Shown here piece by piece: positions 13,719 through 60,439 of a stretch of 64,000 nt of DNA. The notes beneath the pieces are model-generated. The model worked only from the letters and a program-made list of their open reading frames with translations, did not search any database and was not told the origin of the DNA. The number at the start of each line of letters is the position of its first letter. Position 1 is the stretch's first letter. The stretch lies in the IMG/VR virus record IMGVR_UViG_3300044633_000899, positions 62,001 to 126,000 of that record; one strand, written 5' to 3'. The position numbers and the translations under genes are program-made.

Positions 13719-14562
13719 TGATCAAATAATTAGTGAAGTTAGAAACGAGTCAATGTTAAATAAAAAACAAGATCGTATAATAACGATTGATGACACAATA
13801 ATTAAAAAATACATCAATATTAACGTATATGGTTACGATAATGATTATAATAATTTAAATATTGATTATATCTCCAAACATAGAGGTTTTCCAAATTTAA
13901 TTAATAGGTTATTATATGAGGTTTATGTTGATTATTTAAATGATAATGAAGATAAAACAATGACTGGTATTGTAGGTATTTTTACACCAAATGAATATAC
14001 CAATTGGTCAATACTTAATTATTTTGGTGGACATAAATTTGTTAAAGACATTTTAATCCAGGAGTTTAAAAACGATAAAACAACACAAAAAACGCCAAAA
14101 GAATTTTACCGTTGGTTAATAACCAATAAGAGTATGTTGTTTGGTGAAAAATCACAGATTTTAAAAAAGTTGGTTAGAACAAACCTAAATACTTTTAATA
14201 AAGGAACAAAAACGGAATTATTTTTAACAAAAGTACTTAAAGAATCTGGATTTGATGTTAAGTACTTTCCGCCAGGTTCAACATATGATAGAAAATATGG
14301 TATTGATTTAATTATAAATAACACCTCATACCAAATTAAAGAATTAGTTGGGATTGAGGAATTAAATGATGGGTATTATTTAAAAACACCATTACCTAAA
14401 GAATATAAAAACCTTAATGTTAAACGAATAATGTTAGTTGATATCAATAATGGTGAGTTTGTATCGTTTCCGAATAAAGATTATGTTGTTAGTCAGAAAG
14501 ATAATGCTTTTATTGTTGATAAATCTACTAAACTAAAAGTTGGAAATATATTTAAACTATGA
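13711..14562 (+). CDS. putative PD-(D/E)xK nuclease-fold protein
   Basis: G..TE....L...GF.V..D..YGIDL.....YQIK pattern in the C-terminal half. Confidence 0.4.
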   Translation: MNNDQIISEVRNESMLNKKQDRIITIDDTIIKKYININVYGYDNDYNNLNIDYISKHRGFPNLINRLLYEVYVDYLNDNEDKTMTGIVGIFTPNEYTNWSILNYFGGHKFVKDILIQEFKNDKTTQKTPKEFYRWLITNKSMLFGEKSQILKKLVRTNLNTFNKGTKTELFLTKVLKESGFDVKYFPPGSTYDRKYGIDLIINNTSYQIKELVGIEELNDGYYLKTPLPKEYKNLNVKRIMLVDINNGEFVSFPNKDYVVSQKDNAFIVDKSTKLKVGNIFKL

Positions 14563-15065
14563 AAATAATTATAACCGAAAGCCAATATAAATTCTTAACT
14601 GAAAATTTTGATTCTGTTTTGGATATATACTCAAAGAAAAATAAAGGTGAAACATTAAAACCTTCCGAATTGGATGTGTTAAAAGTTTTTAATGATTATG
14701 TAAAAAAAGGTGGCACACCAGAAGAATTTGTTTTTAATCAAGACGATGTTTATGGATTTGATGAGAGAGAAGGTATGTTATTTAATTATAATCTAAAAGG
14801 TCGGCCATTACAATTTGAGTTCACTGAAGAAACTGAAACCGAAAATGATATTGACTATTTTGGTGAAATAACATTTGATGGTGATGAATACCTCGGCGTT
14901 ATTGTAACGGATAAAAATGGTTATTTAATTGATTATGATTTTTACTCAACGTTAACAAAAGGTGATGTTAGATTACAGGAATTATTAATTGTTGATAATA
15001 GTGATGCAGAATTTAGAAATTTTTTACAAGAAATGGTTATTAACGTTTTAATAAATGAAAAATAA
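14559..15065 (+). CDS. leader-bearing acidic hypothetical protein
   Basis: MKIIITESQYKFLTE start. Confidence 0.65.
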   Translation: MKIIITESQYKFLTENFDSVLDIYSKKNKGETLKPSELDVLKVFNDYVKKGGTPEEFVFNQDDVYGFDEREGMLFNYNLKGRPLQFEFTEETETENDIDYFGEITFDGDEYLGVIVTDKNGYLIDYDFYSTLTKGDVRLQELLIVDNSDAEFRNFLQEMVINVLINEK

Positions 15066-15453
15066 TTTAAAAGAAAAATTAAAGGACTTAATCAAAAAGG
15101 TTGGTTTTGAATCAACGATAAGAGTTGTCGGATCCTTGGATAAAACTTTTGAAATTTTTGACATTAAAAAGCCAATGGATTTCTTAAATTTATTTAATGA
15201 CCTAGAATCAGTTCAGAGTGAAGAACGTCAAGAGTGGACATTGTATAGATATAAAAAGGGACATAATTTAATGGTTTACAATAGAGAAAATGATTATGTT
15301 TATATCAATTATGATGAAATTTGGTCAGTTTTGGGAGATAAATTCGGTCTTAACTACTCTGAAATACAGGATCTTACAAAGAGATGGTTGGATGAGGTCT
15401 ACAATTTAAGGGGAGTCACACCTAACGAAGTATACTATTACGTTTGGTGCTAG
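15055..15453 (+). CDS. family-A paralog 1 with spacer-encoded C-terminus
   Basis: Close paralog of 16977-17426; ends WLDEVYNLRGVTP-NEVYYYVWC*. Confidence 0.7.
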   Translation: MKNNLKEKLKDLIKKVGFESTIRVVGSLDKTFEIFDIKKPMDFLNLFNDLESVQSEERQEWTLYRYKKGHNLMVYNRENDYVYINYDEIWSVLGDKFGLNYSEIQDLTKRWLDEVYNLRGVTPNEVYYYVWC

Positions 15454-15488
15454 TTGGATGAGGTCTACAATTTAAGGGGAGTCACACC
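15387..15488 (+). repeat. CRISPR-like repeat-spacer-repeat (36+30+36 nt) overlapping gene 3' end
   Basis: GTTGGATGAGGTCTACAATTTAAGGGGAGTCACACC exact at 15387-15422 and 15453-15488 (identity extends 3 nt, TAA); 30-nt unique spacer. Confidence 0.85.
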
Positions 15489-15536
15489 TAATACTAAATA
15501 TTTAAATTCTTATGATATTTATAAATAAATAATATT

Positions 15537-16973
15537 GTGAAAATTTTATTAAACGAGAAACAATTCAAAAATATTGTAGTTCTATTATCTGAAGATGACG
15601 ATAAAAAAATAAACGTAATGTTTGTTGGTGACAGCCATAGTGATGGCCAAGGGTACACCTGGAATTATGATTTAGAGAAACAACATCCAGAATGGAATGT
15701 AACACATATTGTAAAAGGTGGTAAAACAACAGAGTGGATGTTAGAAAATATGTTACCAGAATTATCAAAAAAACATTATGATTTAGTTTTCATATTAGGT
15801 GGTACAAATGATGTTATGTCACCATTACCAATAGAGACACCAATCAACAATATTCAAAAAATGGTTAATGCAGTCAACACCCAAGGTGGAAAAGCAATTG
15901 TTGTTATCGGATTTGATAGTGAATCTATTATGGATGTAAATAAATTACGAACAACGAAATATTGTGACAAAGAATGTTTAAAAAAGTTTAAACCAAAAAG
16001 AGTTGAATTCCAACGTAAATTAGAAAGTTCAATCCAAAACGCAACAATAGTACCACCACTTGTTGGTGATTACACTTGGGCAAATGATGGTATACACGTC
16101 GGCGGATCAAAACACAAACTATTATCAAGTACCGTTGAAAATTATATAACAAAAGGTGAGGTTAAAAACCAAAAAAAATCACTAATTAATCAACTATTAG
16201 ACAAGTATACAGAAGTAATCCAAAACAAAAGTACAATTGACGCAATAAGTCCAAGAAAAGAGATTAAATTATTACAAATACTTTTTTCAATTGCTGAAGG
16301 TCAAAAGAACAGAAATTTTTCTGGTACATTAGATTCTGACACCATTACTAGACTTAAAAAATATCAAACAACTAATAATTTACCGAATACAGGTATTTTT
16401 GATTATCAAACAATTTATAGTATAAACAACAAGATAAGCCCAAAATTAAATAAAGTTTTAAAACCAGAAATGGCAAAAGAAACAATATCAGATCCTGGAT
16501 CCTCAATTGTTAGTACGAGTAAATTAGTTAATGATTTAAAATCATTTGGTTTAACTGAAAATGCTGCAAAAGGTTTGACAGCAAACGCATATGGTGAAAG
16601 TGGTTTAAATTATAAAGCGAAAGGTGATTCGGGTTCCTATGCGAAGAACACTACAAAATCAATTGATATTGGTGGTAAAAAATATTGTTCATTTGGTTTA
16701 TGGCAATTTAATGTGTGTGGTGGGTTAGGTATTGAGTTTTTAAAAAAATACAATACACTTAACAGTGGTAATACGGATAAAATAGAAACTCTGTTTGATT
16801 ATAATAAACAATTAGAGATTATGGGTTCTAAGATAATGAAAGAACAATCTAAAGGTGATAAGAGTGTTAAAACTTGGATTGACTGGATTGTTGATAATGT
16901 TGAACGACCTGCTGACAAATCTGGTGCAAAACAAAAACGACAAAATTTTGCTAAACAACAAGGTTGGATATAA
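15537..16973 (+). CDS. leader + SGNH/GDSL esterase + PG-binding + phage tail lysozyme-like protein
   Basis: FVGDSHS, GGTND, DGIH; LKKYQTTNNLPNTGIFD; AAKGLTANAYGESGL..FGLWQF; GTG start after TATTTAT. Confidence 0.7.
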   Translation: MKILLNEKQFKNIVVLLSEDDDKKINVMFVGDSHSDGQGYTWNYDLEKQHPEWNVTHIVKGGKTTEWMLENMLPELSKKHYDLVFILGGTNDVMSPLPIETPINNIQKMVNAVNTQGGKAIVVIGFDSESIMDVNKLRTTKYCDKECLKKFKPKRVEFQRKLESSIQNATIVPPLVGDYTWANDGIHVGGSKHKLLSSTVENYITKGEVKNQKKSLINQLLDKYTEVIQNKSTIDAISPRKEIKLLQILFSIAEGQKNRNFSGTLDSDTITRLKKYQTTNNLPNTGIFDYQTIYSINNKISPKLNKVLKPEMAKETISDPGSSIVSTSKLVNDLKSFGLTENAAKGLTANAYGESGLNYKAKGDSGSYAKNTTKSIDIGGKKYCSFGLWQFNVCGGLGIEFLKKYNTLNSGNTDKIETLFDYNKQLEIMGSKIMKEQSKGDKSVKTWIDWIVDNVERPADKSGAKQKRQNFAKQQGWI

Positions 16974-16976
16974 GTG

Positions 16977-17426
16977 ATGAAAATAATAATAACTGAAAAT
17001 CAATATAAATTGATTAAAGAAAATATTTCTTTAAAAGAAAAATTATTGGGTTTAATCAAAAAAGTTGGATTTAAATCTGTTGTAAAAATTGTCGGATCTT
17101 TGGATAAAACATTTGAAATTTTTGATATCAAAAAACCAATGGATTTCTTAAACTTGTATAATGATTTGGAATCAGTTCAGAGTGAGGAACAACCTGATTG
17201 GACTTTATTTCGTTATGAAAAACACAAAAATTTAATGATTTACCATAGAAAAAATGACTACGTTTACATCAATTATGATGAAATTTGGTCAGTTTTGGAA
17301 GATAAATTTGGTCTTAACTACTCTGAAATACAAAAACTTACAGAGAGGTGGTTGGATGAGGTATACAATTTAAGGGGAGTCACACCAACGGAAGGAAATT
17401 GGAACCAAAAAGATTGGGTTGGATGA
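16977..17426 (+). CDS. family-A paralog 2 with leader and spacer-encoded C-terminus
   Basis: MKIIITENQYKLIKE; ends WLDEVYNLRGVTP-TEGNWNQKDWVG*. Confidence 0.7.
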   Translation: MKIIITENQYKLIKENISLKEKLLGLIKKVGFKSVVKIVGSLDKTFEIFDIKKPMDFLNLYNDLESVQSEEQPDWTLFRYEKHKNLMIYHRKNDYVYINYDEIWSVLEDKFGLNYSEIQKLTERWLDEVYNLRGVTPTEGNWNQKDWVG

Positions 17427-17450
17427 GGTCTACAATTAAAATAGCCACAC
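17351..17450 (+). repeat. second CRISPR-like repeat-spacer-degenerate repeat
   Basis: Repeat at 17351-17386 (1 mismatch), 31-nt spacer, copy at 17418 identical for 20 nt then degenerate. Confidence 0.8.
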
Positions 17451-17518
17451 AAATAACAATAATATAATTTGTTAATATCAAATTATATTATTATTTTTTT
17501 AATCAAAAGTTAATCATT

Positions 17519-38423: not shown

Positions 38424-39947
38424 ATGAACTTACAAAAATCCACAAGAATAATAAAAGAAGAATCTAAATTACCCATTAATATTTTGAGGAGGTTAGATTT
38501 ATCGGTTGGATTATTTGATAGGATGAAAAAAGCGGCATTAATTAAATCAATTGATGGACCATTTAACGTTCATAATGTTGCAAGATATGCCGCGGAAGAA
38601 ATTATACCTTGGCATGATGAGGATGGTAATGATTATGAGGATTTTGGTATTTGGGTTTACGATTTTAAAGATTTTTTAATTAACAAATATGGAGAACAGA
38701 CCAAAGAATATATAAACAAAGTATATCCTCAAGGTGGTTTTAAGAGTGATGGTTATGATTATATTTTCTTGAAACATTCCGATATAAATGGTGGAAGTGG
38801 ATTTAGTGAGAGTTATAATACTTGGGGTAATTTACTTTTAGGTCGTGGATGGCGGTTTCCATTGGATTGGTGGGAGATCAAAGCCGATTTGGATAAGATG
38901 GACGAGGGAAAAAAAATAATATTAAAACCAAACGACAAACATAATACTTATGGATATTATTTCTCAATTATAAAAAAGAATTCAAATGTACAAGAGACCA
39001 TCAAAAAAACATTAAGGGAAGAACTGGAATCAAAATGGAATATAGGAAACAAACACGGAAACAAATATAATTATCAACACGGGTTTTGTCATTACTTTGC
39101 ATATAATATTATTGGTAAATTAAAAAAATTATATCCAGATAGAAATATTAGATATTACTTAATACTGGCCGATGAGGTTTATGATTTTGACGAGGGGGAA
39201 GTGGAGCAATCATATCTTGTTCACGCTTATATAAAGATTGATGATTTATATTTAGATTCAAATGGGTTTGCAACAGAAGAAGAAATAAAACAGAGAACCC
39301 AGGGTTGGTATGATAGACAATTAAACCAATTACCAGAAGATTATAGGATAGATATTTGGCACGATGAATATAATAAAATACCAAAATATTATTTTAATAA
39401 CCAATTCTGTAATGTAGGTACAATAAAAAAAGATGTAGAAAAATTCTTATCACATCCAGAGGTAAAAGAACTATTACAAATTATTGATAATAATCAACAG
39501 ATAAAGGAGGGGTTACCAAACCGAACCAAAGAATTAATTTTAGATAAGATTAGGACAATGGGGTTTGACGATGCTGCAAGTATAGTTGGTGGAAAAGATA
39601 ACCTTTCAAAAATAACTGGGATAAATACGTATGAAGAATATCTTAACTTGTTTAATGATCTTACTATTTCAACCAGTCAAGAAAAACCATATATAACATT
39701 ATATAAGAATAACAAAGGTATAAATGTTTTCGTTAAGTATTATGAGGCTAAATCCAAAATGTCTTATATTTTTATTAATCACAACATACTTCAAAAACCA
39801 CTTAGTGAATATAACATACAAAAAAGTAGAGTATTAAGAAAATGGTTAAAAAATACTTATGATATAGAAGTTAAAAATACGGATTTTTTACAAGCATACT
39901 ACCCAGGTGAAGAAAATGCTGGGGGTTATTTAGAATATTTAACATAA
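38424..39947 (+). CDS. mosaic leader-linked polyprotein (RR domain, unknown domains, family-A domain)
   Basis: MNLQKSTRIIKEE; internal NVQETIKKTLREE; C-terminal LILDKIRTMGF..A..IVGG..FNDL..WLKNTY. Confidence 0.7.
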   Translation: MNLQKSTRIIKEESKLPINILRRLDLSVGLFDRMKKAALIKSIDGPFNVHNVARYAAEEIIPWHDEDGNDYEDFGIWVYDFKDFLINKYGEQTKEYINKVYPQGGFKSDGYDYIFLKHSDINGGSGFSESYNTWGNLLLGRGWRFPLDWWEIKADLDKMDEGKKIILKPNDKHNTYGYYFSIIKKNSNVQETIKKTLREELESKWNIGNKHGNKYNYQHGFCHYFAYNIIGKLKKLYPDRNIRYYLILADEVYDFDEGEVEQSYLVHAYIKIDDLYLDSNGFATEEEIKQRTQGWYDRQLNQLPEDYRIDIWHDEYNKIPKYYFNNQFCNVGTIKKDVEKFLSHPEVKELLQIIDNNQQIKEGLPNRTKELILDKIRTMGFDDAASIVGGKDNLSKITGINTYEEYLNLFNDLTISTSQEKPYITLYKNNKGINVFVKYYEAKSKMSYIFINHNILQKPLSEYNIQKSRVLRKWLKNTYDIEVKNTDFLQAYYPGEENAGGYLEYLT

Positions 39948-42795: not shown

Positions 42796-42846
42796 ATGTA
42801 TAATTTAAATGATCCCCACGTTATTGGTTGGGGGATAAAACCATTG

Positions 42847-42918
42847 TAGTCCCACCGGGAATCGAACCCGACTTTCCAGGATGAAAACCTGACGACCTAA
42901 CCGATAGTCGATGGGACC
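42847..42918 (-). tRNA. trnE: tRNA-Glu (TTC), no encoded CCA
   Basis: Full cloverleaf: GGTCCCA/TGGGACT acceptor, TCAGG-TTTTCAT-CCTGG anticodon arm, GGTTCGATTCC T-arm. Confidence 0.92.
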
Positions 42919-45161: not shown

Positions 45162-45560
45162 ATGAAAATTATTATTACTGAAGACCAACATAACAAATTA
45201 AAAGATAATTTAATGAAACTTATTAATCGTTCCGAATTTAGTGTTGGGGTTAAAGCGGTTGGTGGTTTAAAGAACTTGATTAAAATTTTATATGATGGTG
45301 ATTATAATTCATTTGTTAAATATGTGTCTGATGATTTAATTTACAACACACATAAAGTTAGACATCATTATTTTTTATTTGATTGTAACATCTCTATCTT
45401 TTTAGATCATTCAGAGAGATATAACCCTGTTTTTAGTTTTAGACCTAGTTGTTTTAATAGTGTTATGCGGGAGAAATATGGTGTGGACGATAAATATATT
45501 TCTTCCATATGGAAACAATATTCAAACTATGTTATTAATAGGTATTTAAAAGAGAATTAA
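45162..45560 (+). CDS. leader + family-A-like module
   Basis: MKIIITEDQHNKL; LI....F..GVKAVGGLKNL. Confidence 0.65.
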   Translation: MKIIITEDQHNKLKDNLMKLINRSEFSVGVKAVGGLKNLIKILYDGDYNSFVKYVSDDLIYNTHKVRHHYFLFDCNISIFLDHSERYNPVFSFRPSCFNSVMREKYGVDDKYISSIWKQYSNYVINRYLKEN

Positions 45561-45679: not shown

Positions 45680-46615
45680 ATGAATAAAATAATGTCTGTA
45701 AGAATTATTATTAATATGCGTGACTTAAAACGTATAAAAGGTTCATTCAAGAAAAACTTTAACAATATTAATCTGTCTTTAGATATTTTAAAAGGTTTGC
45801 CATTTTTAGAGGAAGATACTAAAAATCGTATAGAGAATGGATTATTACCACAACCAGGTAAAATCTTTGAAACTATGGTAACCCAACAAATTGCAAACAT
45901 ATTAGAATGTAAATATGTTGGTAATGGTTGGTATCGTGGTGAGGATTATTCTCTATATCAAGATGGTGGATCAAATAAATCCGACTTAACCATATATAAT
46001 CATCTAAATGGTATATCATATAGAATAGAGATAAAGGAAAGTTTGTCATATGTAAAAACTTGTGGGTTCACCTATGACGATGATGGGGGCATACTTGAAT
46101 GTACCTCAAGAGATTTGGTTTTCAATAACTATGTTAAGTCTTTATTTAATGGTGGTGTTTTGTCTGACTATAACATATTGGATAATTTGGGTGTTAATAA
46201 GAGATATGAACTTAATGTTGGTATTGATAACATTACAACAACCAGATTTGATTACATTATATCACACAACGGTGACGGTGTATTAAATGTTATGACGATT
46301 GATGAGTATAATAGTAACCATTCATTTTTAATTGAAGTTAGAAGTTGTAGTAGAAACACCAAAAAAGTATTTACCCCAAATAAATTGGATATTATTGATG
46401 ATTTCTTATATTTGAATGTTGACGAAGTTTCTGAGATGAAACAGAGGGGTGGTAACAAATCATCAAGATATAAATACATAACAAAAAACACCACATTTTC
46501 ATTTAAAAAAAATAATATTGAGATGTTGGGTAATAATAACTTTCGTATTCACATTGGTAATGTTAATCAACACGTTGGGGATGTGTCTATAATCCAAAAA
46601 CCGTTATTTGTGTAA
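45680..46615 (+). CDS. putative type II restriction endonuclease
   Basis: FE..V...KSDLTI-x11-IEIKE PD-(D/E)xK pattern; convergent with an MTase. Confidence 0.55.
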   Translation: MNKIMSVRIIINMRDLKRIKGSFKKNFNNINLSLDILKGLPFLEEDTKNRIENGLLPQPGKIFETMVTQQIANILECKYVGNGWYRGEDYSLYQDGGSNKSDLTIYNHLNGISYRIEIKESLSYVKTCGFTYDDDGGILECTSRDLVFNNYVKSLFNGGVLSDYNILDNLGVNKRYELNVGIDNITTTRFDYIISHNGDGVLNVMTIDEYNSNHSFLIEVRSCSRNTKKVFTPNKLDIIDDFLYLNVDEVSEMKQRGGNKSSRYKYITKNTTFSFKKNNIEMLGNNNFRIHIGNVNQHVGDVSIIQKPLFV

Positions 46616-47773
46616 CCACAATAAATCAACATCAATAAATAAATCATTTAATTTAGACACCAGTTCCATTGGGTGTTTAATATTCTCTTGTTTTTTTCCC
46701 GCGTTCATCTTATATACTTTATTGATATTTTCACTTTCCAGTATTTCTTGAATTAACGACATATCAACTGGTACGTCAATCCAGGGTAATGATAATAAAG
46801 TCTTTTTGGTTAACGTCATTGAACTGTCGGATGTTCTCCACCACCAATATAAGTATGTACTATTTAATAGAATTAATGCTTTGTGGTAAGTCTCAAAATC
46901 CTTTAAATATATTACAATTTGACCAGACCTATCTAATTTTTTTGTTGATGCTGAAATAAAATATCTTGGTGTACTTGTAATATACAAGGGATAATCTGTT
47001 ATTTCTGTTGTATATTTTGATAATGTATCATTATGTATATATTTTGTTGTGTTCGGAGATGTTTTATAAAAAATTTCTTTTGTAAATAAACCATCATCAA
47101 GTTTATCATCAAGAGATAATATCATTTTATCCCTCTGGTTACTTTGCCATCTAATTTGTGTTGTTGTTTTTCTATTATTGTCTGTGTTATGAGCTATGAT
47201 TATTGATACCCTAACTGTTGCGTCATCAAAAATATGTCCTGGTATGTTATCAAAATGATATGTTGTTAGTGATGAATATGTTAATAAACCTTCTCGTGTT
47301 TTTTTAAAATCCCTACCATTTGAAAATGACATTGGGTTTATACTAATAAATCCCCTTGCTTTTTGAATCACCTCATCTAAAAAATATGCGTACATATCAT
47401 TGTCCATATATTTGAAATATGGGGGGTTCATTATTACGTAGTCATAATCAATTGTTAATGTTAAAAAATCCTCATTGTAACTACTTGGTACCACACCAAA
47501 CTTTTCCATAAAATTGTTTAATGCAATGGCTAACTGATATTCATCTTTCTCATTAATTATTAACCTATTTTTAATAAAATCAATCGGATCTTCTTGTATT
47601 GAGGCCAAAAGAATTGATAAAACACCCAAACCACAACAAGGATCAAACCATATTCCTTTACCATCATCAAACACTTTGGTTTTATTCACCATAAATAACG
47701 CAATATCTTCTGGTGTGTGAAAAATTCCCTCCTTCTTCTTCTTTTCTTGGTCGTACGGATTGATAAAATTCAT
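46604..47773 (-). CDS. N6-adenine/N4-cytosine DNA methyltransferase
   Basis: FHTPEDIA, FDPCCGLG (motif I), MNPPY (motif IV). Confidence 0.85.
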   Translation of the reverse strand: MNFINPYDQEKKKKEGIFHTPEDIALFMVNKTKVFDDGKGIWFDPCCGLGVLSILLASIQEDPIDFIKNRLIINEKDEYQLAIALNNFMEKFGVVPSSYNEDFLTLTIDYDYVIMNPPYFKYMDNDMYAYFLDEVIQKARGFISINPMSFSNGRDFKKTREGLLTYSSLTTYHFDNIPGHIFDDATVRVSIIIAHNTDNNRKTTTQIRWQSNQRDKMILSLDDKLDDGLFTKEIFYKTSPNTTKYIHNDTLSKYTTEITDYPLYITSTPRYFISASTKKLDRSGQIVIYLKDFETYHKALILLNSTYLYWWWRTSDSSMTLTKKTLLSLPWIDVPVDMSLIQEILESENINKVYKMNAGKKQENIKHPMELVSKLNDLFIDVDLLWLHK

Positions 47774-49502: not shown

Positions 49503-49694
49503 ATGAAAATCATTATAACGGAACAACAATACAAATACATATCAGAAATGATTAAACTTGACATTAAAGTTGGGGATGTGATTATGGGTGGTAAATTTAA
49601 AAACAAAAAGATTGTTGTTAAAACCATTGGTAAAAATGATAAGGGGGATATTACAATTAATGGTAAACCACTATTAAGATTTAGACTATTATGA
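49503..49694 (+). CDS. leader + small conserved beta-domain
   Basis: MKIIITEQQY; IKVGDVIMGGKFKNKKIVVK.IG. Confidence 0.65.
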   Translation: MKIIITEQQYKYISEMIKLDIKVGDVIMGGKFKNKKIVVKTIGKNDKGDITINGKPLLRFRLL

Positions 49695-54520: not shown

Positions 54521-54814
54521 ATGACTAAAGAAGAATTAAAACGATTAAGACGTATTCACGAGGTTAGAGACACAATTGAATTTCAGATGGAAATTCAGGA
54601 TCCTTGTAATTTTGAGGATGGTGATGAGTATGCTGACTTTTGTATTGGTGAGGGTATTAGTTTTTTTTATGGTGATGAAGGTTACGAAAGAACTGATGAT
54701 ACTTTTAATGACGAAACTGAAGACTATCTACGTGATTATATAACCGAGATGATGTATGCCGAATACTTTGATGAATTGGTTACACTTTGGGATGAAAATA
54801 ATGATGAGTGTTAA
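54521..54814 (+). CDS. acidic RR-family-like protein
   Basis: LRRIHEVRD..DPC.F; TATTTAT upstream. Confidence 0.6.
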   Translation: MTKEELKRLRRIHEVRDTIEFQMEIQDPCNFEDGDEYADFCIGEGISFFYGDEGYERTDDTFNDETEDYLRDYITEMMYAEYFDELVTLWDENNDEC

Positions 54815-55239
54815 TGAAAATAATAATAACTGAAAACCAGTATAATATAATTAAAGAAAATATTTCTTTAAAGAAAAAACTACTTAACGTGGTTAAAGAG
54901 TATGGGTTTGATACGGGTATTATTATCACTAGATCAGCCGATAAATTAAAGGAGTTAGCATTTAACAATGATCCGATGGAGTTTTTAAATATATATAACG
55001 ATTTAAAGTCCGTTCAAAGTAAAGAGAGTTCAGATTGGGTTTTATTTTCAAATAAGAAAGATGAAAAATTTATCTTTTACTCAGTGTCAAAAAATATCGC
55101 GTATATTGATTATATTAAAATCTGGTCAATCTTGGAGGACGAATTTAAATTAACTTACATTGAAACTGAAGACTTGACGCAAAAATGGTTATCAACCACT
55201 TACGGATTAACTGGTGTTAAAACAGCACAAATAACATAA
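54814..55239 (+). CDS. family-A paralog 3 (no repeat cassette)
   Basis: MKIIITENQYNIIKENISLK; ends WLSTTYGLTGVKTAQIT. Confidence 0.7.
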   Translation: MKIIITENQYNIIKENISLKKKLLNVVKEYGFDTGIIITRSADKLKELAFNNDPMEFLNIYNDLKSVQSKESSDWVLFSNKKDEKFIFYSVSKNIAYIDYIKIWSILEDEFKLTYIETEDLTQKWLSTTYGLTGVKTAQIT

Positions 55240-59297: not shown

Positions 59298-59876
59298 ATG
59301 AAAAAACTATTAGTATTTTTAATGATAATGATATCGGGAATAGCATTATCACAATCAACGGTAAACCCAGACACAGTTTGTTATCAATCAACAGCGTTAT
59401 CAACGTATTCCGTACCAAATATTGGTGCTGGAACATACACTTGGACTGTAACAACACCGGGGGTAATAACAAGTGGGCAAGGAACAAGTACAATTTCTGT
59501 TAATTGGTCTACAGCAGCACCTGGATTAATACCAAATGGTGTTTCTGTGACGTATTCATCACCACCACCAGCCAATTGTCCAGCAACACCTGTTACTCTA
59601 AACGTTTTAATCTATAATATTACACCAACAATAACACAAATTGGCCCTTTTTGTGAGTCAGATCCTTGTGTTACATTAAATGGAACACCAATTGGTGGTG
59701 TTTTTAGTGGTGTTGGGGTCAATGGTACACAGTTTTGTCCTGATTTAGTTGCTAATGGTACAAATAATACCTCAACAATAACATATACAATAACATCTGG
59801 TGGTTGTACATTCTCAACACAATCAACTGTTGGGGTTTATGGTACGCCATCATTATCACCAATACAACATAACTAA
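59298..59876 (+). CDS. secreted PKD/Ig-like protein ending SPIQHN
   Basis: Signal peptide ..GIALS|Q; YTWTV..G.ITSGQGT..I.V.W. Confidence 0.7.
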   Translation: MKKLLVFLMIMISGIALSQSTVNPDTVCYQSTALSTYSVPNIGAGTYTWTVTTPGVITSGQGTSTISVNWSTAAPGLIPNGVSVTYSSPPPANCPATPVTLNVLIYNITPTITQIGPFCESDPCVTLNGTPIGGVFSGVGVNGTQFCPDLVANGTNNTSTITYTITSGGCTFSTQSTVGVYGTPSLSPIQHN

Positions 59877-60439
59877 TGAAACTCATTATTTTTATATTAT
59901 TCTTTTGTTCATTTACCTTATTAGGGCAACAAACCTTTGAATTATGTCCTGGTGAGTTAAAAACTGTTAGTTATTTCTCAGAAACTAATAGTATTGGTAT
60001 AAATATATGGTCAGTTAACGGATTAACATACATTGGAGACACCTTAGTATACAGTTTTAATCAACCAGGTGTGTATAATATTGATTTAGTTAGGGAAAAT
60101 GTACTATGTAGGACTGAAGAGTCGTACAATGTCACAATAACACCCTGTATTGGGGTCATTTATTGGATTCCAAACGCATTTACACCAGATAATAACGAAT
60201 TTAATCAAACATTTAGACCTATTTTTAATGATGGGATAGATATTGATGGTTTTTCGTTCACTATTTATAACAGATGGGGTCAATTAATCTGGGAAACAGA
60301 GGATTTGAACGTAAATTGGGATGGAACATACAATAATACTATATGTTCGGATGGTATTTATATCTGGAATCTTAAATTTAACGTAAAAAACAACGATGAA
60401 AAGAGAAATGACCACGGACATATTGTAATAATACGTTAA
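59876..60439 (+). CDS. T9SS type-B sorting domain (gliding motility-associated CTD) protein
   Basis: IPNAFTPDN...N..F.P..F.IYNRWG..I.ET....WDG....DG.Y.W..GHI..IR; signal ..TLLG|Q. Confidence 0.85.
   Translation: MKLIIFILFFCSFTLLGQQTFELCPGELKTVSYFSETNSIGINIWSVNGLTYIGDTLVYSFNQPGVYNIDLVRENVLCRTEESYNVTITPCIGVIYWIPNAFTPDNNEFNQTFRPIFNDGIDIDGFSFTIYNRWGQLIWETEDLNVNWDGTYNNTICSDGIYIWNLKFNVKNNDEKRNDHGHIVIIR

Follow-up and report, generated by a model that had tools for sequence, protein, structure and literature searches.

Two repeat-spacer units at the ends of paralogous phage genes

The stretch of DNA analysed here, called the window below, comprises 64,000 nucleotides (nt), namely positions 62001-126000 of the 296,330-bp metagenomic contig IMGVR_UViG_3300044633_000899, with a G+C content of 29%, and belongs to the genome of a T4-like jumbo myovirus. 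In this window, two members of a multi-copy gene family end in a 36-nt repeat and a spacer of about 30 nt, followed by a further repeat copy, an arrangement reminiscent of CRISPR arrays. The 36-mer GTTGGATGAGGTCTACAATTTAAGGGGAGTCACACC is found exactly at 15387-15422 and 15453-15488 and with one mismatch at 17351-17386; a fourth copy, starting at 17418, retains the first 20 nt and is divergent beyond. No match to the repeat was obtained in 100 shuffles of the window, and the four positions listed in a first-pass annotation of this DNA are confirmed by sequence match. The two loci consist of the following features, with the basis of each in brackets:

15055-15453, plus strand: family gene, paralog 1, 132 amino acids (aa), the last 22 codons being repeat plus spacer (list of open reading frames [ORFs], translation)
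15387-15422, plus strand: repeat 1a, gene-embedded and leader-proximal, encoding (W)LDEVYNLRGVT(P) (exact match)
15423-15452, plus strand: spacer 1, 30 nt, translated as NEVYYYVWC (sequence)
15453-15488, plus strand: repeat 1b, full-length (exact match)
15489-15528, plus strand: displaced ancestral C-terminal tail NTKYLNSYDIYK and its stop codon, now untranslated (sequence; comparison with the related locus L036)
16974-17426, plus strand: family gene, paralog 2, 150 aa from a GTG start, with an ATG at 16977 (ORF list, AlphaFold2)
17351-17386, plus strand: repeat 2a, gene-embedded, with one mismatch, GTA for GTC, which is synonymous (sequence match)
17387-17417, plus strand: spacer 2, 31 nt, translated as TEGNWNQKDW, translation ending with VG and a stop in the next repeat (sequence)
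17418-17458, plus strand: terminal repeat of which the first 20 nt are kept, continuing into a remnant that looks like paralog 3 at its 3′ end (sequence)
17451-17500, plus strand: perfect inverted repeat of A+T only, then a T run, a putative terminator of the gene-plus-array unit (self inverted match 17451-17499)

Paralogs 1 and 2 share 81% identity, and in both ORFs the first repeat lies in frame. The two spacers bear no relation to one another. At locus 1, the stop codon TAG is made of the last TA of the spacer and the first G of the next repeat; at locus 2, the frame reads GTT-GGA-TGA inside the second repeat. The first-pass reading of both stops, of the in-frame first repeats and of the unrelated spacers is right in every detail, as is its description of a silent alternative tail at locus 1, where NTKYLNSYDIYK and its stop codon follow the second repeat intact and in frame. 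The same tail (NIKNLNSYDIYK) is found after the last repeat of the syntenic locus in L036, yet two different spacers precede it there. The likeness that had been noticed between 17436-17458 and the end of the array-free paralog 3 (55217-55236) is also real. Locus 1, with a full second repeat next to an intact ancestral tail, looks like a first-generation event, and locus 2 looks like an array brought to paralog 2 by recombination, its partial repeat being joined to a paralog-3-like remnant. Regarding transcription signals, the inverted repeat at 17451-17500 does not pass a terminator scan with a G+C criterion and is a probable terminator of the kind that such a scan misses; a scan for promoters and terminators was uninformative, its counts lying below those of shuffles.

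Arrays in related phages

A search of IMG/VR with the repeat core retrieved 25 loci with 1-6 copies at a spacing of 64-69 nt. A second retrieval, based on protein patterns from the middle of the family and hence unbiased for the repeat, gave 79 loci. When all loci are pooled, 182 distinct gene ends can be compared, 121 of which carry 2-6 repeat copies, so that neither one invariant tail nor a single fixed duplication accounts for the relatives. The period of these 121 arrays peaks at 65-68 nt, and of 109 unique spacers, which show no mutual similarity, 97 measure 29-32 nt. In L011 and L007, for instance, repeat-spacer arrays begin inside the family gene and finish in a degenerate repeat. Many family genes bear one repeat copy only, and decayed arrays are common, fossil second repeats being visible in protein tails. 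Within the 296-kb genome itself, arrays or single repeats occupy at least eight dispersed paralogous loci. Two thirds of the 182 gene ends bear arrays, which makes the arrangement a common one among the freshwater T4-like jumbo phages of this uncultured clade.

Internal repeat copies keep 0.85-0.97 identity per position (0.78 at position 28). In the terminal repeat of the 121 arrays, positions 1-23 retain about 0.9 identity to the first repeat and positions 24-36 are lost (0.25-0.5). In divergent lineages, both copies show a lineage-specific variant of the repeat, e.g., GGTGGGTGAAGCATACAATTTAAGGGGAGTCACAAT, which indicates that it is the local repeat that is duplicated. Arrays stay associated with the gene family even where protein identity falls to about 35-50%.

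Polarized spacer gain and turnover

The order in which spacers are gained can be read from close relatives. Between L007 and L025, which come from different samples, identity is 100% across 1500 nt upstream of the array and 99.9% across 2659 nt downstream of it; their four distal spacers are identical and the gene-proximal one differs (31 vs. 33 nt). The comparison of L007 with L025 and L004 places spacer gain at the gene-proximal end. Turnover is also seen at the window loci, the flanks of which are 90-97% identical to those of the syntenic L017/L036 and L005, with unrelated spacers in differing numbers. Regular near-identical repeats, unique spacers of near-constant length, polarized gain and a degenerate terminal repeat, four of the marks of a CRISPR array, are present, and the arrays are of CRISPR type with ongoing, polarized spacer gain. 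One of the two options left by the first-pass annotation, namely mini-arrays without CRISPR-associated (cas) genes embedded in coding sequence, is borne out by the variable copy number, the polarized gain, the truncated terminal repeat and the lack of cas genes nearby.

Translation footprint and origin of the spacers

In the frame of the gene, a stop occurs within spacer codons 1-5 in 4 of 101 spacers, the corresponding counts being 34 and 30 of 101 for the two remaining sense frames and 26, 26, and 31 of 101 for the antisense ones (Fisher p = 4e-9). Over codons 6-8, stop frequency is alike across frames. Inner spacers, which are no longer first, have an early gene-frame stop in 2 of 38 cases and are thus equally strongly depleted. 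The depletion implies that truncating spacers are eliminated and that about five residues or more have to follow GVTP in the protein, a requirement consistent with the AlphaFold2-modelled strand 136-140 described below. Since inner spacers show the same depletion, each of them must once have been first, which independently confirms polarized insertion from the gene side; every spacer was at some time translated as a protein tail, and each tail footprint is a built-in record of polarized acquisition. The earlier claim that the spacer writes the C-terminus is therefore right.

Apart from early-stop avoidance, the tails resemble translated random DNA, and the Tyr/Trp/Cys-rich tail to which the first-pass annotation pointed turns out to be a one-off. 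No clear residue preference specific to the gene frame was seen in an incomplete check, in which the one other frame compared gave the same positional hydrophobicity. Depending on spacer length modulo 3, which sets tail length and ending, tails end in VG and a stop, in WMRSTI and a stop, or read through into the next repeat. About one quarter of the spacers stop after 5-9 codons. As to their origin, spacers have on average 3.53 open frames of six vs. 2.99 after shuffling and a G+C content of 35% vs. 29% for the phage; from this composition, they look like natural, largely coding DNA.

The gene family and the protein segment encoded by the repeat

The family comprises 655 close homologues, falling into 518 clusters at 50% identity, and its proteins of about 130-150 aa are encoded in multiple copies in the phage genome. 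The repeat is the coding sequence of their conserved C-terminal helix (W-LDEVYNLRGVT-P). In an alignment down to 30% identity, the sole invariant residues are Met1 and Trp125, the latter being the W immediately ahead of the repeat. As a protein sequence, the motif W-L-x-x-x-Y-N-L-x-G-V is retained even by genes that differ in their DNA; in paralog 3, which has no array, it is encoded by WLSTTYGLTGVKT. Its conservation in array-free paralogs with different DNA indicates that the repeat-encoded motif is ancestral protein sequence. The repeat is also the most conserved stretch of the gene at the DNA level: where residues agree, codon identity reaches 0.73 within the repeat vs. 0.60 upstream (pairs below 65% protein identity, which are not independent), a modest excess, and the conserved codons include the rare TTG and AGG.

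An AlphaFold2 model of paralog 2 has a mean predicted local distance difference test score of 90.4. The repeat-encoded residues form helix 115-130 and the first residues of the final strand 136-140, which in the model spans the repeat/spacer junction. A fold search of the PDB with this model gave no match with E below 0.3, Pfam and PHROGs gave no assignment, the family is absent from GenBank phages, and its alignment holds no invariant polar residues suggestive of catalysis. Two further members lie in the window, outside the arrays:

54811-55239, plus strand: paralog 3, without array, C-terminus WLSTTYGLTGVKTAQIT and a stop (sequence comparison)
38424-39947, plus strand: 507-aa ORF, the C-terminal ~125 residues of which form a divergent version of the domain (tblastn, 30% identity, E = 1e-11)

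The domain can also be found in other architectures. In L019 (689-2209, minus strand), it is the C-terminal module of a fusion with Fe/Mn superoxide dismutase, and this fusion carries an exact repeat, then a single spacer and a second repeat that is degenerate; the 760-aa database protein P0134 contains five tandem copies of the family domain. One family member sits between the portal and prohead-protease genes (L123:1864-2310). An N-terminal MKIIITENQYKLIKE is common to otherwise different genes of the window (16977-17030, 54814-54870, 14559-14609, 45162-45287, and 49503-49643). It ends in I-K-E, which fits the T4 protease cleavage rule, and may be a capsid-targeting propeptide; if so, the proteins that carry it would be packaged or injected.

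Phage genome, probable host and search for machinery

The genome encodes a T4-type portal protein with an intein, prohead protease S77, the capsid protein Gp23, a tail sheath protein and the baseplate proteins J and W, together with a family B DNA polymerase, ribonucleotide reductase, DnaB, ThyA and RNA ligase. The intein of the portal gene recurs in several relatives (L052:5676-8768, L077:15-2213, L123:1-1120). Regarding the host, proteins with CHU_C, PKD and Ig_7 domains are encoded by the phage genome, an array-bearing 1.8-kb contig was binned with a Flavobacterium metagenome-assembled genome (MAG), and the capsid protein shares about 43% identity with its counterpart in Flavobacterium phage immuto, with a Microcystis phage scoring equally well. 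Together, domains, binning and capsid similarity hint at a host among the Bacteroidota. Inside the window, the best indication of this kind is a pair of adjacent ORFs with PKD and CHU_C (type IX secretion C-terminal) domains at 59298-60436.

Of the 57 window ORFs of at least 140 aa, 53 were scanned against Pfam and PADLOC, and no cas, reverse transcriptase, transposase or recombinase family was found, in agreement with the first-pass statement that the window has no cas gene. The same four classes were not detected in about 80% of the 296-kb genome, covered partly via syntenic relatives; over these parts, there was likewise no member of the Cas1, Cas2, Cas4, Cas9, Cas12 or Cas13 families, and the reverse transcriptase, Cas1 or recombinase for which the first-pass annotation suggested looking elsewhere in the genome did not turn up. 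The PADLOC list of one batch was dominated by methyltransferases and is not conclusive for that batch. Large unannotated ORFs are T/S/N-rich and fibre-like, and the four largest that were checked have no RxxxxH (HEPN) motif. Outside the arrays, ten loci of the phage's own contig hold no repeat-complementary sequence that could act as the anti-repeat of a trans-activating CRISPR RNA.

Relation to known repeats, arrays and diversifying systems

Arrays of Bacteroidota type VI-B and II-C systems have 36-bp repeats and 30-bp spacers (PMC8092290, PMC13187072), and in Flavobacterium columnare, VI-B arrays gain spacers via the II-C adaptation module in trans (PMC8092290). The phage arrays share the 36-nt repeat, the ~30-nt spacers, the GTTG start and, in relatives, the CAAC end, and they resemble VI-B arrays in acquiring spacers without cas1/cas2 of their own. 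They differ in that no cas13b, cas9 or anti-repeat was found, in the CACC end of the window repeat and in the terminal repeat cut at position 23. Relatives with the CAAC end (CACAAC) are L030, L033, and L034. The reverse complement of this CAAC variant begins GTTGTGACTCCCC, which presumably resembles the start (5′ end) of II-C repeats, that of Neisseria for instance; the likeness was seen by eye, and of the Neisseria repeat used, published papers bear out the first 24 nt. Aligned in sense orientation, the repeat matches the PspCas13b direct repeat (10.1101/2023.03.10.532141) at 21-23 of 36 positions, which is suggestive only (p = 0.006-0.05 against interior shuffles). Folding yields no stable hairpin on either strand (-2.1 kcal/mol, worse than shuffles), and a permissive Rfam search of two arrays found no CRISPR-DR or other RNA family on the repeats. 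The case made in the first-pass annotation against a Cas13b-type repeat loses force in view of the CACAAC relatives and the partial match to PspCas13b; its statement that the repeat lacks a strong hairpin holds.

Among virus-borne elements, the closest counterparts are the mini-arrays of archaeal portogloboviruses SPV1/SPV2 and of phages and prophages (reviewed in PMC11656645), which likewise have 1-5 spacers, no cas genes in cis, a presumed dependence on host machinery and a fast turnover between close relatives. Unlike in these mini-arrays, first repeat and leader are here protein-coding and the first spacer is translated, at least eight dispersed paralogous loci per genome are involved, and the repeat co-varies with the gene across lineages. 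Solitary repeat units, RNA anti-CRISPRs and extraneous crRNAs (CRISPR RNAs) are also phage-borne CRISPR repeats outside a cas locus (PMC11656645, PMC13187072); unlike solitary repeat units, the repeat here lies in an ORF and encodes a conserved helix, and two thirds of its copies grew real spacers. Huge phages encode compact or partial CRISPR systems (PMC7162821, PMC11656645) and provide a precedent for jumbo phages with CRISPR components, but the arrays of huge-phage CRISPR-Cas are intergenic and lie beside phage cas genes (PMC7162821), whereas those described here are gene-fused with no cas gene found.

In Neisseria, a single leader-adjacent repeat suffices to seed acquisition (PMC12477760). 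Locus 1, where a second copy is followed by the intact ancestral tail, has the structure expected for a first integration in such array neogenesis; the published cases concern bacterial chromosomes in the laboratory, and the present ones are natural, recurrent and situated on phage coding sequence. A variable C-terminal segment on a conserved protein, with silent alternatives downstream, also recalls diversity-generating retroelements (DGRs), shufflons and silent pilin cassettes. These differ from the present loci, in which no reverse transcriptase, template repeat, invertase or homologous cassettes are found and the inserts are unrelated, foreign-looking DNA of fixed length. The DGR-like mutagenesis proposed in the first-pass annotation is rejected: no reverse transcriptase family was detected in the parts of the genome examined, and the spacers are unrelated to one another or to any template rather than being mutated copies. 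Virus-borne mini-arrays are established; to our knowledge, an array in which an ORF provides both leader and first repeat and the newest spacer is translated has not been described.

Proposed mechanism and alternatives

We lean, with modest conviction, towards CRISPR-type mini-arrays which are built by the host on the 3′ coding end of a phage gene present in multiple copies and extended in trans at the gene-proximal repeat. A CRISPR-adaptation-type (Cas1-Cas2-type) integrase would insert a spacer of ~30 nt directly after the gene-embedded repeat copy and duplicate the repeat, the gene thereby serving as leader. The new spacer would become the last 5-12 codons of the protein and push older spacers into the 3′ untranslated region, and insertions truncating the protein within five codons would be lost through selection on the last strand. 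Since no cas gene could be recognised in the parts of the phage genome covered, a host CRISPR-Cas system would most likely provide the integrase, and any effector, in trans, and a system of Bacteroidota II-C/VI-B geometry is the most likely candidate for building and using the arrays. These would probably be co-transcribed with the gene, and they could either supply crRNAs to the host effector or serve as repeat decoys which soak it up. Array anatomy, variability, polarity, the translation footprint and the absence of cas genes in cis are observed; host machinery in trans, co-transcription and any crRNA function are what we infer.

Several results weigh against this host-dependent explanation. 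A repeat pattern with 28 of 36 positions fixed matched none of 185,579 bacterial species-representative genomes, and in metagenomes it matched phage contigs only and no non-phage contig; MAGs rarely retain arrays. No protospacer was found for five spacers, including both window spacers, in an exact scan of IMG/VR, for two arrays searched in GenBank phages, or for one array searched in plasmids. When the 109 spacers were compared with 1.7 Mb of related phage DNA, 16 gave weak matches vs. a mean of 10 (range 5-17) for shuffled ones, so that related viruses are not borne out as targets in that DNA. Known viral mini-arrays, by comparison, have repeats identical to those of the host and mostly target related viruses, neither of which is shown here. 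The cut of the terminal repeat at position 23 would make the last and often only spacer unusable in a Cas13b-type crRNA, which consists of a spacer and then a full repeat; the truncation would fit a crRNA of Cas9 type, in which the spacer is followed by the 5′ part of the next repeat. We know of no established case in which host enzymes frequently add spacers to the genome of a T4-like, presumably lytic phage, and the association of array and family down to about 35-50% protein identity is less easily explained by a host-dependent model than by a phage-encoded mechanism.

The selected function might, though this is unlikely, be diversification of the tail itself, with stacked alternative C-terminal peptides for a virion or injected protein and no role for RNA guides. 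Each acquisition would write a tail, deletion between repeats would re-expose an older one, and the outcome would be variation of an epitope recognised by host defence. Such a function would suit the constant translation of the first spacer, the strong selection on its first five codons, the confidently modelled β-strand 136-140 across the repeat/spacer junction, the old and lineage-specific association with a multi-copy family, one member of which lies between portal and prohead-protease genes, and searches that found neither protospacers nor a host repeat. However, stop avoidance is equally expected if the protein must merely stay functional, and the incomplete check for frame-specific residue preference brought up nothing clear beyond it; about one quarter of the spacers stop after 5-9 codons, spacer length modulo 3 alone sets how long a tail is and how it ends, and ruler-like spacers of 29-32 nt with a 36-nt duplication are hallmarks of Cas1-Cas2 and of no known protein-diversifying system. 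At least eight dispersed paralogs per genome carry the repeat, arrays are short, turn over fast and are often decayed, and spacers do not match competitors in the related phage DNA searched, all of which would also be expected if the gene end mimicked a host repeat, abundant phage mRNAs titrated the effector in the manner of an RNA anti-CRISPR or extraneous crRNA, and Cas1-Cas2 integrated functionless spacers by mistake. Precedents for this by-product of a decoy exist in the reported, roughly 1000-fold rise in plaque formation with an overexpressed extraneous crRNA in a Cas13b system (PMC13187072) and in the seeding of arrays by a single repeat in Neisseria (PMC12477760). We nevertheless consider it rather unlikely: the scans of bacterial genomes and metagenomes found no host repeat to be mimicked, the strict polarity implies a leader-like determinant within the gene that accidental mimicry leaves unexplained, and the motif, conserved in array-free paralogs with different DNA, is first of all a protein motif.

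The lack of a host counterpart and the occurrence of arrays in phages whose family proteins are only 35-50% identical could also point to an integrase, with or without an effector, that belongs to the phage or a co-resident element, escapes recognition and is independent of host CRISPR-Cas. About 80% of the contig is covered, most ORFs of the genome are unannotated, and huge phages with compact or partial CRISPR systems exist (PMC7162821, PMC11656645). Yet the parts examined contain no Cas, transposase or reverse transcriptase family, the large unannotated ORFs are fibre-like and without RxxxxH motifs, and the family protein has no invariant polar residues suggesting catalysis, which makes such machinery, taken by itself, improbable. 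Taken together with tail diversification, it yields a phage-autonomous system in which the phage's own integrase captures DNA of ~30 nt, with duplication of the repeat, and rewrites the C-termini of virion or injected proteins; an adaptation-like mechanism would have been repurposed or have evolved independently, and the downstream units would be a stack of silent tails. This system stays viable owing to the gene-array association across deep family divergence and, unlikely as it is, deserves to be kept in view. In contrast, it is highly improbable that paralogous gene ends simply underwent tandem duplication or recombined unequally, with nothing CRISPR-like involved. The terminal partial repeat of locus 2, with its paralog-3-like remnant, and the sharp cut at repeat position 23 do suggest that recombination spreads arrays between paralogs, but the spacers are unique, tightly sized and unrelated to paralog tails or to one another, arrays reach six units, and near-identical genomes differ by exactly one proximal repeat-spacer unit. 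Plain tandem duplication is therefore rejected, being contradicted by the spacer statistics.

Under either origin, the novelty of the arrangement lies in a coding repeat and leader, in a newest spacer that is translated and under selection, in the many paralogous loci, and in the lack of a cognate host repeat or target in the searches made. Locus 1 offers a natural case of array birth on coding sequence in which the displaced ancestral tail is intact. If host enzymes build the arrays, as we favour, host adaptation would often act on phage genomes, and Cas13b or Cas9 may be exploited or blocked by phages. If they are the work of the phage, proteins would be diversified by a new mechanism, the phage-autonomous system being then the first case in which spacer acquisition diversifies a protein instead of making guide RNAs.

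Other features of the genome

Between the two array-bearing genes of the window lies one gene outside the arrays:

15537-16973, plus strand: intervening gene with GDSL lipase, peptidoglycan-binding and phage tail lysozyme domains (Pfam)

The only tRNA of the window is a tRNA-Glu (anticodon TTC) at 42846-42918 on the minus strand. A homologue of SmpB, the transfer-messenger RNA-binding protein, is encoded in L122:6097-6507 (contig ~138.2-138.6 kb), which deserves mention as array processing or early-stop spacers would yield non-stop or truncated messages. An SNF2 helicase in L074:7113-9968 contains an inserted LAGLIDADG homing endonuclease, which the 585-aa version in L019 lacks. DNA methyltransferases (C5 and N6) are unusually numerous (L067, L071, L128, and window 46604-47773), and in one PADLOC batch at least three members matched many methyltransferase models. 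L128 (1-3637; contig ~260.8-267.5 kb) also contains a 2233-aa ORF without a Pfam match, the visible C-terminal 1211 residues of which are N/T-rich with short internal repeats (INGTCSV.D.TM), and which is probably a virion protein.

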